A stretch of DNA of 47,975 nucleotides from Lenisia limosa (taxonomy: Eukaryota; Protista; Breviatea), in NCBI GenBank assembly GCA_001655205.1, contig LPNZ01007145.1, positions 1 to 47,975 of the forward strand, in the 5' to 3' direction. Positions 9,611 to 15,914 of this stretch are shown here, in pieces. The position numbers were made by a program, and so were the translations under genes. Under the pieces are notes generated by a model that saw nothing but the letters and a program-made list of their open reading frames with translations, was not told where the DNA came from and ran no database searches. The first letter of the stretch is position 1. Each line of letters starts with the position of its first letter.

Positions 9611-9837
9611 AATATAATGTGTGAAATATTGTTCAGCTCAACAAAGAGAGACCTGTTGCAGCAATACCTCAAAAAAGTGTACACACGGTAAATATTCACA
9701 CAATTGGAGAAAAAAATCTGTTCTCACAGTTGTAGTAGAAAACAGAACATATCGATATGTATTTCATATGCGTCAAGAATCGGGAAACAGGAGTACAGCA
9801 AAAACAAAACTAAAACATGAAACCAACCACAACCATC

Positions 9838-12800
9838 TTATCTCCTTTGAAGCGCTGTACGCAATTCATTCCGAACAACTTCCAAGGGAGTAGGCACCTT
9901 TGAAATGAGAAATTCTCATGAGTAGAGCAAGAGTTGATTGTATTTCAAGAAAAGAAAGTTCAAAAGCGTACCTGAGATCCGACTTTCCTCGTTTTTACAG
10001 AGGGTTCGTCGTCATCATCATCATCGTCGTCGTCAATCACACGCCTGAAACATGAAACAATAATATAATCCAACATATGGGAGATACATTCTTGTTTTCT
10101 TCTAGTAAATGCCCTCATACACACTACTTGGTGGAACATACAAGACAACAAGTGCAAAATACAAAAACATGCCCTCTCCCCACTTTTGTCGTTTCCTCAT
10201 TCTCTTGGGTTGCACAGCTTCATTGACAACCACTGTGCGGTATACGACTTTCCTTTGCTCAGCTGCCTCGTTCTCTTTCGTCGGTTCCTGGGCGGTAATT
10301 CGGATTAGCTACCTTTAAAAATTCTTGCAGCACAACCTCTCATTTAAGACTAAATTCAATGAAGAGGAAGATCATACTATCTGGTTCTTCCGGAAGGGGT
10401 TTAACCCCATTAAATAAGTAACAAACTTTCAAACAGAGTTAGTGATTATCTAATAATCAAGATGAACTGTAATGCCATCCGACTCATACCCCCTTCCCAT
10501 CCCTTCTGCTTTTTTATGTACATAGTTTTCTACACACATACAGGTGTATCGATATAGGAAATAATATATTCTCAAATTATGTTATCTTCCAAAGTTCACA
10601 TTTCAAAACCCACTTTTCCATCTCCGGTGGTTCTCCACGGACTGTGTGTGCCCTTGTCAATGATGTGGTTCAGAGTGGCCATGATTTCCTGAGCTGAGGG
10701 GGTCAAAAATATCAGGCAAGTTAAAGCTATGATATATATACATGATACTATCACACATTAGAAGATTAACATGATTTACACTCCAAAAACCTTCAGTAGG
10801 TAAATGGCAGAACCCAGGAAGAATTCCCGGAATAGAAAGCATCTTGCGAAGCCAGTTCTGAATGGTTAGTTTATCAAAGGACTAGATTGAAGTCATAAAA
10901 TATGATTTTTATTGAAATGATAATATACAAAGGTAAACATGATAAGAAGGCATAAGTTTGATCAAAAAAAGGATAATAAATAAGTTCATCCTCAACCAAA
11001 ACCGCACATACAGCGAAGAACTTAGTATACGGGGGCTGGGAGGCGTGGACGACACCCGAAATAGCATGGCGAACAATAGTGTGATCCGTGGTGGCCGCTG
11101 ATGACTCGAAATAGGATAGTCCAAGATCAAAAGCTCTGCAATGGTGATAAAAACCTATGATACAGTCCATCCTTATCAGCTTTTCTGCATTCCGATACGC
11201 AAAAGTATTCGGTTTTCACCCGTCCTACCCTTGACCCATGCAAGCAGTGATTGCTGAGATAAAACGCTTCCTAAACTGTGAAAAAAGTGTCACTATCATC
11301 TTTACTATCTATGCCAAACAGAGGGGTGTTTGTAAATAAATCAATACACTTCCCATTAAAAACTATCAGCAAAGCCTTTGAAGTTACCATTGGTGTCTCT
11401 CAGACAATACAGATAAAAAACTAGCAAAATAATACGAACCATTTCACCACTATCCGCCATCCTCTCACTTCAGTCCGAGTGAAGTGGTTGGGTCAAGGCC
11501 GGGGTAGTTTGTGGAATACCCCTTAAACAGGATTTCCTACAAAATAATATTTGGAAGGTGAGACTTGTAAGCGGAGTTCAGCACTACCCTGTCTCACCAG
11601 AATATCTTGATGCAGCTGAGGGTGGTCACAGAGAAGGACCGTGATGAGATCGAGGAATAGCGGCGTCGTAAGCGATTGGGATACTAAAACGTCAGCTTAA
11701 ACACGGGGTATGTATGGTCTTGTATTTTTTTTCAACATTGTATCTGGATAAAGAGGATTACTGTCACAAATAAGACCGGACATATTGAGCGGTTATACCA
11801 AGGTTAATTGCAAGCTCACAGTTTCCGAAGTATCCTTCTTCTGAAAAGCGGTCAGTGATCCATGACAACAGGCAACGCGCTGGGAGGGGGTCCTGTGGAG
11901 GGGTGATGAGGGAAGATCTGGGGCTCTCACTCTCCAACACTCATATCAACACGGGACACAAGAGCCTACCTCAACCAATTCCAGAATGTTGTTGATATGG
12001 GGCTGAAGGGACGCCCCATCGGAGTGCGGGCGGAGGATTTTACTCAGTTTGATGAGCTTCGTCTCAGTGGCAGTGCGACTAAAGAGTGGTGAAGATGAAT
12101 AAGAATATGCAAATAATCAAAAAAAAAAAAAAAAAAAAAANNNNNNNNNNNNNNNNNNNNNNNNNNNNNNNNNNNNNNNNNNNNNNNNNNNNNNNNNNNN
12201 NNNNNNNNNNNNNNNNNNNNNNNNNNNNNNNNNNNNNNNNNNNNNNNNNNNNNNNNNNNNNNNNNNNNNNNNNNNNNNNNNNNNNNNNNNNNTTGAGTCA
12301 TGATTGACGAAACTCTAGAATGTAAAGGGTCTTTTCTGCTTCAAAGGAAACCATGAGGGCAATAATGCGAGGGCTACTATCTTTTCTACCCTGTTTTACT
12401 CCATATGCAGTTGTATAAGAGACAAGCACCCATAAACACCAACGATGAAGAAGGGTCGAAGATGGACTTGATAATTTGCTTGGTCAGAGAGCTGAACTTG
12501 AAGAGCGCTTTGCCTGAATAGGTCAGTTGTCAGATAAATATCGACTTTTTTGATGATTATTTCCTACATCATAATCCATTTCTCAATTATTAATTAAGAA
12601 TATGTTTATCTAGAGGATACAAGAATGTTATAAAACAGGTAGAGGAAACAAGAACAACTAAGTACATTGCATTTCAATATCACCCAGATATTTGATCTCA
12701 AAAAGCACAAATGAACCAGTTCCATAATAGATATTAATCAGCGATTCAACACAAAATTATAATTACAATTTGATGGTAAGAAACTCCTTAATAAAACCCA

Positions 12801-15662
12801 CATTCTTCAGCTGAGGTGTTTTCAATTTCATCTAAAAGAGGGGCAGGGATGGTCTCGTTCAAAACTATGAAAATAAATTTTAAAAGGAATATCTTTGTGA
12901 ATGATTGGTGATAATGATTCAATTAATTGTCTTCCGATTAGCTACATCACAAACACTTGGAATTGAGGGATGAGCTGACGGTCTTGGCGATTATCCCCGA
13001 ACGGCTACATAACTGTGAGGCCCACAGGCGGCCAAGAACGTCCGCATGTTTTCCTGCTATTCTTTCGGTGATCGACTAGACTATGAGAAGGGAATTCACA
13101 TTTTTAGGGACCCAAGAATAGAAATAAACTTGAATCATTGTGGAAAACAGAATGCTTCAAATCATCGGTCAAAACATTCAAAAGGAATTTGGAGGTTGTT
13201 ATTGGATTTGTACATGTAGTACATGTATTATATAAGCCAGAACCGTCAACACCCATCACCATGCTTAAAGAAATTTCAATTATTGGATTCGAGACTTGCA
13301 AGACAATCCCCCAACCTCGAGAGTTTTCATCAGGAACAGTCGCATGACTTCATTGTCATCCGCGTTCTCCGCTGCAATGCGCATGATACCGGTGAGGATG
13401 GTGTAGGACTAAAACGTCAAAAAATAAGCTGGAAATCATACTAGTGATAGTTTGAGAGCAAAAGTATAAAACCGATCACACGATATATACCTGGAATGTA
13501 TGAGACGCAAGGGTGCACAGGTGCTCAGTGTACACTCTGACGTTGTTGGATGTGTTAGATGAGAGAAGATGCCACAGTAGCACGTCAACTACTCTCTGAA
13601 GTGTTGAGCCTCGGAATTATGATACAAGAGTAAAAATTAAAGGTGAAAATGATCAATCAGTGGGAAGGAATCATTTTTGGTAATTATAGAAGAAATACTG
13701 AATCTGTGGCAACGATGATGATTAACAATTGAAACAATAGAGATCTATTATCCAGTCCCTGTACTTTGAAAGTGGCGAAGTCCACCACACAAGCCGGAGA
13801 GCAAATGATATCCGTCTAAACTGGTGAGGCACTGGACCTACTTGGTGTTTGAATTCACATTAAACGTACCACATTTCCTTCCTTTGCAATGGTTCTCAGA
13901 AGGAAAAGGAGTAGACTGCAGTTTTGAAACCTGGAAAGATAACTACTGCATTACTTCCAGCTGACAATTATTCACAATTCCTGTATCAAATATCACGCAA
14001 TAAACGACGTTCATNNNNNNNNNNNNNNNNNNNNNNNNNNNNNNNNNNNNNNNNNNNNNNNNNNNNNNNNNNNNNNNNNNNNNNNNNNNNNNNNGGTCAT
14101 TGGCAACACCCAGTTCGGCCTTTCCTACATACTTTAATACTGTTTGAAAAGACGAACAGATAGAAACGGAAGGATCGATCACAAATACTTTTCTTATTCT
14201 ATTCGACACAAAAACAATACGCGAAATGAGAAAAATTGTGTGACCTTTAGATCAGACCTTGGCCAAACTGAACAGTTTATCAGCTCTGATCGGCTCAAAA
14301 AGTCGGAACACCACAATACGAATGGCTGCATGTGACGTCTGCATCGTCAACAGACCGAAGGCACGGGAATGTTGATCAAATTCTTCATTTTCTACTCAGG
14401 AATACGACAAGCGAAGGACACCAAAAGCCCTTTGAGAGTACCCACCTTGTCTAAAGAGTCGTTTTCAAGACAAACAGCAAGATCTCCTAGCTCCTGCTGC
14501 AATACTATAACGTTATAGATTGACAGGTTGTCAAGAGGTTCACTCATGATGGGTGGAGATAAAGATACAGTAATAAAAGATAACAACTGTCAGTACAAAG
14601 GTATATTTTGTGAAATGATATTTACTCTCTTTTTAATAAGGTGGGAGAGAATGCTAATTAATGATACACATTCAATCTAATTGCACACAAACAATCCCTG
14701 CACTCCAAAATAGCTATTTCGCAGACATGGGATTCCCAGGGGCGAGTCATTGATATCTTTGGAGAAGTCTACTTTGGTCTGTTTTAATGCTGCACTGCAA
14801 AGATGAGAAACAAAGCTATTGATGCTTTGAACGCAAGCATTAAATACAAATTAAAAATGTTACTAAGGTGAAGGTGACATCTTCAACAAATACAACATGT
14901 TTGAGTGATTGAAAAATCAATTTACACTTAATCCCCCTTGATCTATGCTCAACAAGAAAAAGGAGGAGAGCCCCACAAACTGTTTCGCAAGCTCCTCTTT
15001 CTCCATTGCCAAACGCTTGGACTCCATGATCTCTTGATCCAGGTACTGAATGTGCTGTGTGATTTGCTCCAGTTTCTGTGCGTGATCGGCTTCCGTCTCT
15101 TCCGGCTCCATATCCGGCTTGGTGTCATCTTCAGCATCAGGGACTGGCTCGGGCTGCTGGGTGAGGCAATATCGCCAAAATGAATATTGTTTGTTTAACA
15201 AATATTTGAAGAGCAATGATATTTAAGGACCAAATAGCCTGCAATCAGATAAATCTCTAGAATTAACTTTCATATTCAAATGATTACGTTCAAACTATCA
15301 TCACCCAATGAATGCATACACATCGTCTTCCCTCCAACCGCTTCGTCCTTCTCATCCTCGAGGCTGCCTTGGAACATGCTGTCAATATCCATGTCGTCAA
15401 CATCATCAGTGGGGTACTCAAGGTCATCAGCATCACTATATGTTGGTGATGCGGGCGCGTAACTTGGTGACCCTGGTGCGTATTCGGGTGATCCAGGAGC
15501 ATATTCGGGTGATCCAGGAGCATATTCAGGGGAATTAGCGGAGTAGGTTTGATCCTCTGAAGGTGGCGAGGCAGGGGGGTATGTGGGGGATGGTGGGTTG
15601 TAATCATTATTAGCATCTATGTCTTCTGCTTTAGCAGCAGCAAGAAGGGAGTGGATGTCCAT
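9838..15662 (-). CDS. NELFCD: Negative elongation factor C/D (TH1-like) homologue with acidic, CTD-like N-terminal extension and low-complexity C-terminal tail
   Basis: Colinear matches to recalled human NELFCD: [22 protein letters not shown] (FDPRKADSIF/ETPAWLEQMI), [18 protein letters not shown] (HPDCLMLNFTVKLISDAG), [101 protein letters not shown] (DISLIRYFVTEVLDVIAPPYTSDF). Stop TAA at 9838-9840. Joining the 14950-15662 exons to the core is inferred from phase-compatible splice sites. Two N-gaps lie inside. Confidence 0.82.
15441..15602 (-). repeat. Coding 21-bp/heptapeptide repeat resembling the RNA Pol II CTD (7 heptads)
   Basis: [14 protein letters not shown] (SEDQT) [35 protein letters not shown] in ORF 15276..15662; the plus-strand unit tattcgggtgatccaggagca occurs twice exactly. 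Confidence 0.9.
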
Positions 15663-15914
15663 ACTCGCTAGTTAGAGGAAAATGAACCCTTCGGTTCACT
15701 TTTCCAAAATACCGGATACCAAATGATATAAATATGTGTTTTCACACGTTCTAAATACAGATTGGTCTCAAAGAGGTCGAGTAACAAATTACATTCTGAA
15801 AAGAGAGCTAATCAAAACTAATCCCAAATAAGTGAAAAGAAATATTAGTGGAATTTCGGAATTTCTGTACTTATGACTAAGTGGTTCGGGTATATATAGA
15901 TTGATCCCCTCAGA

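Follow-up and report, generated by a model that had tools for sequence, protein, structure and literature searches.

Negative elongation factor (NELF), of which NELF-C/D is a core subunit, stabilises paused RNA polymerase II (Pol II). Pause release is controlled through disordered tails targeted by P-TEFb, namely the C-terminal repeat region (CTR) of Spt5, the RD (Arg-Asp) repeats of NELF-E and the tentacle of NELF-A. Rpb1's C-terminal domain (CTD) is usually viewed as a unique signalling platform. The gene described here lies on the minus strand at 9838-15662 of Lenisia limosa contig LPNZ01007145.1 (assembly GCA_001655205.1, positions 1-47,975), the 47,975-nucleotide stretch of DNA that was analysed and that is called the window below. 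Its first exon encodes seven CTD-like heptads and its downstream exons resemble NELF-C/D. The reading favoured, with moderate confidence, is a NELF-C/D orthologue carrying a CTD-like heptad module that acts in the CTD cycle.

In fission yeast, Tyr1, Pro3, Ser5 and Pro6 of the CTD heptad are essential and Ser2, Thr4 and Ser7 are dispensable, and the essential job of phosphorylated Ser5 (Ser5-P) and Pro6 is recruitment of the capping apparatus (PMC8051263). P-TEFb phosphorylates Ser5 in vitro, tolerates heptads in which Ser2 is replaced by Ala, and is stimulated by phosphorylated Ser7, that is, by negative charge at position 7 (PMC4081074). NELF is also a P-TEFb target (PMC4830430). According to Chivu et al. 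(10.1101/2023.02.19.529146), NELF-B and NELF-C/D occur widely and probably go back to an ancestral state, while the NELF-E subunit and NELF-A's Pol II-binding domain appeared later. This history leaves protists scope to control the NELF core through regulatory handles of another kind. The full-text literature was searched for a NELF-C/D bearing a heptad or CTD-like array and none was found.

Seven Y-x-P-x-S-P-x units are encoded at 15602-15441 on the minus strand, within exon 1, as residues 21-34 and 40-74 of the predicted protein. Units 1 and 2 (15561-15602, residues 21-34) read YNPPSPT (15602-15582) and YPPASPP (15581-15561). Units 3-7 (15441-15545, residues 40-74) are contiguous and read YSANSPE (15545-15525), YAPGSPE twice (units 4 and 5, 15524-15483), YAPGSPS (15482-15462) and YAPASPT (15461-15441). 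Tyr1, Ser5 and Pro6 are present in 7/7 units and Pro3 in 6/7. Position 2 is Ala in 4/7 and Ser in 1/7, Thr4 is found in none, and position 7 is Glu in 3/7 and Ser in 1/7. The initial annotation had placed seven heptads at 15441-15602, with Tyr1 and Ser5-Pro6 invariant and Pro3 kept in six; translation and a repeat scan of exon 1 returned the same seven units and exactly these counts. It did not mention the five-residue spacer SEDQT between units 2 and 3, which divides the array into 2 + 5 units. Exon 1 contains 7 matches to the pattern Y...SP, against a maximum of 4 among 100000 residue shuffles (0 reached 7), and the heptad array is beyond chance. Tandem Repeats Finder reported a 21-nt period at 15443-15527 with 90% matches.

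The codons of the units were compared pairwise. At heptad positions 1, 3, 5 and 6, 28 codon pairs were identical, 50 differed synonymously and 6 non-synonymously, whereas at positions 2, 4 and 7 the corresponding counts were 6, 8 and 49. One pair of units is identical in DNA sequence; the remaining units have diverged at most synonymous sites, and pairwise dS (synonymous divergence) was saturated or beyond for most pairs. Tyr1, Pro3, Ser5 and Pro6 have thus stayed constant despite many synonymous changes, which argues for selection on these positions and points to an old array in which selection holds these four residues in place.

A single poly(A) RNA library, and a single DNA library from that study, contain the locus, and their contigs were aligned over 9750-15749. 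RNA contig 3 (831 nt) begins at ~15751 and passes through exon 1 and then through exons 2-6, with joints at 15339/15153, 14981/14794, 14727/14504, 14446/14338 and 14258/14124. RNA contig 2 (436 nt) extends from the end of exon 9 to exon 14 and stops 45 nt inside the second of two assembly gaps (gap 2), and RNA contig 1 (923 nt) extends from 12024 to 9772 across ten joints. Every RNA joint falls on GT..AG on the minus strand. At the joint of exon 1 to exon 2 (15339/15153) the shorter side is supported by 173 nt of RNA contig. Exon 1 ends with DEA in phase 0 and exon 2 starts with PEPVP, which keeps the heptad exon in frame with what follows. For exons 1-6 the RNA itself establishes the fusion of the heptad exon to the downstream core, and the rest of the gene agrees with it. 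JGI contigs were searched for an exon-exon junction as a sign of a cDNA contig, without a match.

These data bear on three proposals of the initial annotation. In-frame splicing of the heptad exon to the NELF core, with no separate start in between, is borne out by contig 3, which links exon 1 to exons 2-6 across the 15300-14200 interval where a single transcript was in question. The first junction had been written DEA|QPEPVP: its donor, DEA|GT, stands, and its acceptor moves 3 nt further, to cagcag|CCC, giving DEA|PEPVP. A second junction, AKH|INSF, is replaced by AK(H)|AALKQ in the RNA contig. Intron 1 ends in a NAGNAG acceptor, cagcag (15154-15159), of which the RNA contig uses the distal AG; the proximal AG would insert one Gln, which is the earlier version of the junction.

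The start of the reading frame was examined on the same contig. The 5' untranslated region (UTR; 15663-15751, at least 89 nt, to the reach of the RNA contig) contains no ATG, and an in-frame TAA (15674-15672) lies nine bases before the start. The start ATG is flanked by A (-3) and G (+4), and the minus-strand open reading frame (ORF) at 15662-15276 opens with this ATG and carries the heptads.

The identity of the core was assessed with seven 44-45-residue segments of human NELF-C/D, verified against the PDB (e.g. 7YCX_g), which were aligned locally to the spliced model with shuffled segments as the control. Human 122-209 (two segments joined) aligned without gaps to model residues 217-278 with a score of 94, where shuffles gave 31.3 ± 4.6 (Z 13.6). 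Human 338-364 aligned to model 451-477 with a score reached by 41/3000 shuffles over the whole model and by 4/5000 in the expected place; for human 416-455 against model 516-557 the score was reached by 11/3000 shuffles, and for human 525-549 against model 625-649 by 0/3000. The four significant segments of the seven are arranged as in the human protein, shifted by +95 to +113 residues, in agreement with the colinear NELF-C/D match that had been noted from the sequence. The strongest block is formed by exons 5-7, of which exons 5 and 6 share an RNA contig with the heptad exon, and it runs ungapped through the predicted junction of exons 6 and 7.

Pfam was searched with 27 exon or ORF pieces, and the sole core family returned was TH1 (PF04858), as a weak match of exon 20 (11-11.5 bits, E 0.12-0.17, profile positions 515-552 of 579); the other exons, of 20-40 residues, are too short to get through the filters of HMMER. 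As TH1 had been named beforehand, the relevant figure for this match is the per-family probability, P ~5e-6, or ~1e-4 after correction for 27 pieces. No match was found in the PDB by phmmer with three single exons, and a search of the 41-residue exon 20 against 1.84 billion representatives returned two unrelated repeat proteins and no close relative. The similarities taken together make it very probable that the protein is a divergent 777-residue NELF-C/D (TH1 family) orthologue.

The heptad unit recurs on polymerase subunits of giant viruses. A scan of metagenome and viral contigs with exon 1 located 16 loci with YAPGSPE-type C-terminal tails on long intronless polymerase genes. RPB2 (Pfam Rpb2 domains 1-7) on AT-rich contigs accounts for the majority, and several of these contigs are IMG/VR giant-virus metagenome-assembled genomes (GVMAGs); a single locus, on a GC-rich contig (L009 4953-8345), encodes RPB1. 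RPB2 genes with a heptad tail were found at L003 3966-8867, L007 3600-8444, L008 3978-8852 and L010 3948-8363 and on L011-L014, L016 and L017; tail-bearing fragments were found on L002, L005, L006 and L018. The viral tails contain 2-9 heptads each. Among 55 viral units, Ala2 occurs in 36, Gly4 in 37, Ser5 in 44 and Glu7 in 18, and the consensus, Y-A-P-G-S-P-E, is the commonest unit of exon 1 (YAPGSPE twice, plus YAPGSPS and YAPASPT). The search pattern picked loci by motif and not by carrier protein, so the recurrence on polymerase subunits independently supports the heptad as a polymerase-tail-type module, and it suggests a portable module that conserved machinery recognises.

No NELF-like sequence was found in the viral loci: residues 109-777, compared by tblastn with every fetched locus, had no meaningful match, and the scan of metagenome and viral contigs with exon 1 returned no NELF-like locus. 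A protein homologue search with the exon-1 ORF yielded nothing beyond the window's own call (P0003) and a viral RPB2 tail fragment (P0004), and an ESM Atlas search with exon 1 returned only unnamed low-complexity clusters. No account of heptads on giant-virus RPB2 was found in the literature searched, in which a CTD-type tail on the second-largest polymerase subunit seems to be undescribed. The public exon-1 call (P0003; L001 7001-7468) reads a TGA as Trp and has 155 residues, against 128; this read-through indicates that prokaryote-style annotation of a eukaryotic contig used an unsuitable genetic code.

The complete gene model was generated from the RNA joints together with four junctions (6/7, 7/8, 8/9 and 14/15) predicted from phase and GT..AG. 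It is a single minus-strand gene of 25 exons with one open frame of 2334 nt and 777 codons, and we hold this model with high confidence. Exon 1 (15339-15662, 108 codons, RNA contig) contains the start ATG, a short N-terminal segment, the heptads and an acidic stretch. Intron 1 (15154-15338, 185 nt, GT..AG, RNA joint) is followed by exon 2 (14981-15153), with an acidic stretch and a helix-like segment, exon 3 (14727-14794), exon 4 (14446-14504) and exon 5 (14258-14338), all bounded by RNA joints; detectable NELF-C/D similarity begins in exon 5, which aligned to human 122-165. Exon 6 (14051-14124; L001 8539-8612) has 74 nt, 14124-14095 plus 44 nt in the run of N that forms gap 1, with an RNA joint at 14124; its low coordinate is nominal, the gap truly being 71 nt and not 80. 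Exon 7 (13870-13930) is predicted from phase and GT..AG, with the ungapped human alignment crossing the 6/7 junction and no RNA contig over it, and exon 8 (13765-13837) is predicted from phase and GT..AG only.

Exon 9 (13491-13609) has a predicted acceptor and an RNA-supported donor. Exons 10 (13316-13408) and 11 (12955-13075) were placed with RNA contig 2, and exons 12 (12802-12864) and 13 (12444-12513) with RNA depth and length bookkeeping; exons 13 and 14 correspond to model 451-477 and human 338-364. Exon 14 (12246-12314, low coordinate nominal; L001 10340-10408) has 69 nt, 12314-12293 plus 47 nt in the N gap, into which the loose RNA end extends by 45 nt. The acceptor of exon 15 (11970-12078), past a poly-T run, is predicted; RNA contig 1 covers the exon from 12024 and the phase closes. 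Exons 16 (11820-11892, aligned to human 416-455), 17 (11598-11683), 18 (11469-11536) and 19 (11229-11270) are bounded by RNA joints. Exon 20 (11012-11135) is the most conserved (TDHTIVRH…QPPYTKFF) and contains the Pfam TH1 match and the alignment to human 525-549. RNA joints also bound exons 21 (10791-10857) and 22 (10614-10693). The last three exons, covered by RNA contig, encode the C-terminal tail: exon 23 (10184-10287) with a basic KRMRKRQK stretch that looks like a nuclear localisation signal, exon 24 (9972-10044) with a run of nine Asp, and exon 25 (9838-9897) with the stop TAA at 9840-9838. The nine consecutive Asp directly follow the KRMRKRQK stretch (9972-10287), beyond the TH1-like core. 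The 3' UTR (9772-9837) runs to the end of the RNA contig.

Two assembly gaps lie within the gene. Gap sequence was taken from L001, contig NODE_227 of ENA ERZ3820729, which was reached via its exon-1 ORF call P0003 and matches the window at 100% identity across 10 kb. Gap 1 (14015-14094, 80 N) corresponds to 71 real bases in L001 (8569-8639) and likewise to 71 in the contig of the DNA run; it contains the final 44 nt of exon 6, the donor AAG|GT and then 13 G. Similarity past gap 1 was first read as coding, and the true gap sequence puts it out of frame, that is, in an intron. Gap 2 (12141-12292) is bridged by no contig; L001 10362-10530 reads 169 nt inward, comprising 47 nt of exon 14, the donor GA|GT, 11 G and a poly-T stretch. 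Since the window picks up again within poly-T at 12140, the unread part of gap 2 is most likely intronic homopolymer. The reading frame closes over both gaps. Both gaps coincide with introns that start with GT followed by 11-13 G, the gap 2 intron also containing poly-T of more than 50 nt, and other donors of this gene are G-rich as well (GTGGGG, GTGGGT).

The N-terminal extension (residues 1-130) is acidic, proline-rich and probably disordered. In the mechanism proposed here, the array would act as a flexible tentacle presenting Ser5-Pro6 sites to the CTD kinases CDK7 and CDK9. Once phosphorylated it could be read by, or could repel, factors that read Ser5-P on the CTD, and binding or release of NELF might thereby follow the CTD cycle of the polymerase itself. 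The five contiguous heptads would offer two to four binding units of CTD-reader size. As P-TEFb tolerates replacement of Ser2 by Ala and is stimulated by phosphorylated Ser7, heptads with Ala2, and with Glu7 in 3/7, are plausible substrates. The most economical reading, we infer, is a module that serves CTD kinases and Ser5-P readers as phospho-acceptor and docking site. A function as a kinase switch or CTD-reader platform is put forward tentatively and is somewhat doubtful as yet.

Four other explanations were considered, which in descending order of weight are a neutral low-complexity tail, a capping pad or decoy, viral capture and artefact. The heptads may be an ordinary low-complexity stretch rich in Ser-Pro and Tyr, grown by 21-nt slippage and offering at most generic sites for proline-directed kinases unrelated to the CTD code. 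This is judged unlikely, though it carries real weight: outside the heptads the N-terminal extension is plain acidic low-complexity sequence, the DNA-identical unit pair and the 90% 21-nt array show that slippage has occurred, Pfam RNA_pol_Rpb1_R (PF05001) scored 8.8 bits on the array, below its cutoff of 20.3, and the human NELF-C/D N-terminus is also disordered and acidic without a known CTD-like role. The excess of synonymous over non-synonymous codon differences at Tyr1, Pro3, Ser5 and Pro6 (50 to 6) is unlike a recent neutral expansion, and the strict seven-residue register and the identity of units with giant-virus polymerase tails favour a specific module. The plain remainder of the extension and the sub-threshold Rpb1_R score also weigh against a CTD-like module as such. 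So does the size of the array, since fission yeast viability needs more than 8 CTD repeats (PMC8051263) and the array has seven, broken by a spacer. To these are added, on the side of the core and the gene model, the lack of a significant match to the model for human 40-83, 166-209 (alone) and 267-310; the scope of the profile and PDB comparisons, which covered single exon or ORF pieces; RNA support in the form of contigs at ~9-18x depth and not reads; the longest single RNA contig covering part of the gene, with none spanning all 25 exons; and the four junctions 6/7, 7/8, 8/9 and 14/15, which are predicted only.

Alternatively, the array could chiefly offer capping enzyme, or other proteins that read Ser5-P, a landing pad or decoy, tying a capping checkpoint to the paused complex or titrating factors, without control over NELF release. 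The array keeps Ser5 and Pro6, which when Ser5 is phosphorylated recruit the capping apparatus, their essential role in fission yeast (PMC8051263), but Ala2 and Gly4 may remove reader contacts and seven units against the polymerase's own CTD are an unfavourable stoichiometry for a decoy; this explanation is regarded as improbable. Less probable again is a giant-virus origin, by capture, of exon 1 or at least of its heptads, which would then perhaps be a recent passenger not integrated in NELF function. Identical units occur on giant-virus RPB2 and RPB1 tails, and exon 1 matches viral loci at the DNA level with up to 97% in a 30-nt stretch and 90% in one of 48 nt. These matches extend over no more than 53 nt, however, as expected from shared codons for the same peptide, the GC content of exon 1 equals that of the other exons (0.51 vs 0.49), the flanks are otherwise not virus-like, and the synonymous divergence among units argues for age in place; such comparisons appear to give no good evidence for viral capture of exon 1. 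It would be most surprising if the fusion were an artefact of a chimeric RNA contig, of mis-assembly, or of use of a downstream AUG that leaves the heptads untranslated. The RNA contigs do derive from one small low-depth library and the locus contains two assembly gaps, but every RNA junction falls on genomic GT..AG, two independent DNA assemblies show the same bases throughout, the first AUG is in good context with no AUG upstream of it and an in-frame stop just before it, and the frame is open for 777 codons.

If a NELF-C/D with a CTD-like module is the correct reading, the minimal essential grammar of the CTD (Tyr1, Pro3, Ser5 and Pro6) has been placed naturally on a pause-holding factor. 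The fusion would make it possible to test directly if regulators are acted on in trans by CTD kinases and readers, and it bears on the control of pausing before NELF-A and NELF-E existed; the giant-virus occurrence extends the question beyond one protist. More speculatively, and with low confidence, YAPGSPE heptads could be a portable dialect of the CTD code that uses Ser5 only. In the protist it would sit on the NELF core as an alternative to the tentacles of NELF-A and NELF-E in animals, written and read by CTD kinases, phosphatases and the capping machinery, and in giant viruses it would sit on RPB2 or RPB1 and plug the viral polymerase into that machinery.

Compared with metazoan NELF-C/D (TH1L; PF04858; PDB 5L3X, 6GML, 7YCX), the protein is colinear from human residue 122 to ~550 with a core of similar length, shares the motifs F-x-P-x-x-A-D, W-R and PPYT, and likewise has an acidic disordered stretch before the core. 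Overall identity to human NELF-C/D is low, ~27% in the best block. The N-terminus has ~95-110 extra residues, including the seven CTD-type heptads, where that of human NELF-C/D is short and acidic, and the C-terminus has a 78-residue tail with a basic stretch and nine Asp, unlike human NELF-C/D.

Like the Spt5 CTR, the NELF-E RD repeats and the NELF-A tentacle, the array is a repeat or tail region, probably disordered, on a pausing factor. The repeat chemistry differs, Spt5 having TPAWNSGSK or GS-R/Q-TP and NELF-E having Arg-Asp, and none of these mimics the CTD heptad as the array does. The giant-virus RPB2 and RPB1 tails are alike in consensus unit and array size, and both they and the exon 1 array ride on transcription machinery other than cellular Rpb1; the viral tails are C-terminal, on a polymerase subunit and encoded without introns, whereas the exon 1 array is N-terminal on NELF-C/D, in a protein without RPB domains. 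With the CTD of Rpb1 (YSPTSPS) the array shares the period of 7, Tyr1, Pro3, Ser5 and Pro6, and Ser-Pro sites that suit CTD kinases. It differs in mostly exchanging Ser2, Thr4 and Ser7 (for Ala2, Gly4 and Glu7), in having 7 units only, with an interruption, and in sitting N-terminally on another protein. As it lies at the N-terminus of NELF-C/D and not at the C-terminus of the largest polymerase subunit, the array is best described as CTD-like and not as a CTD.

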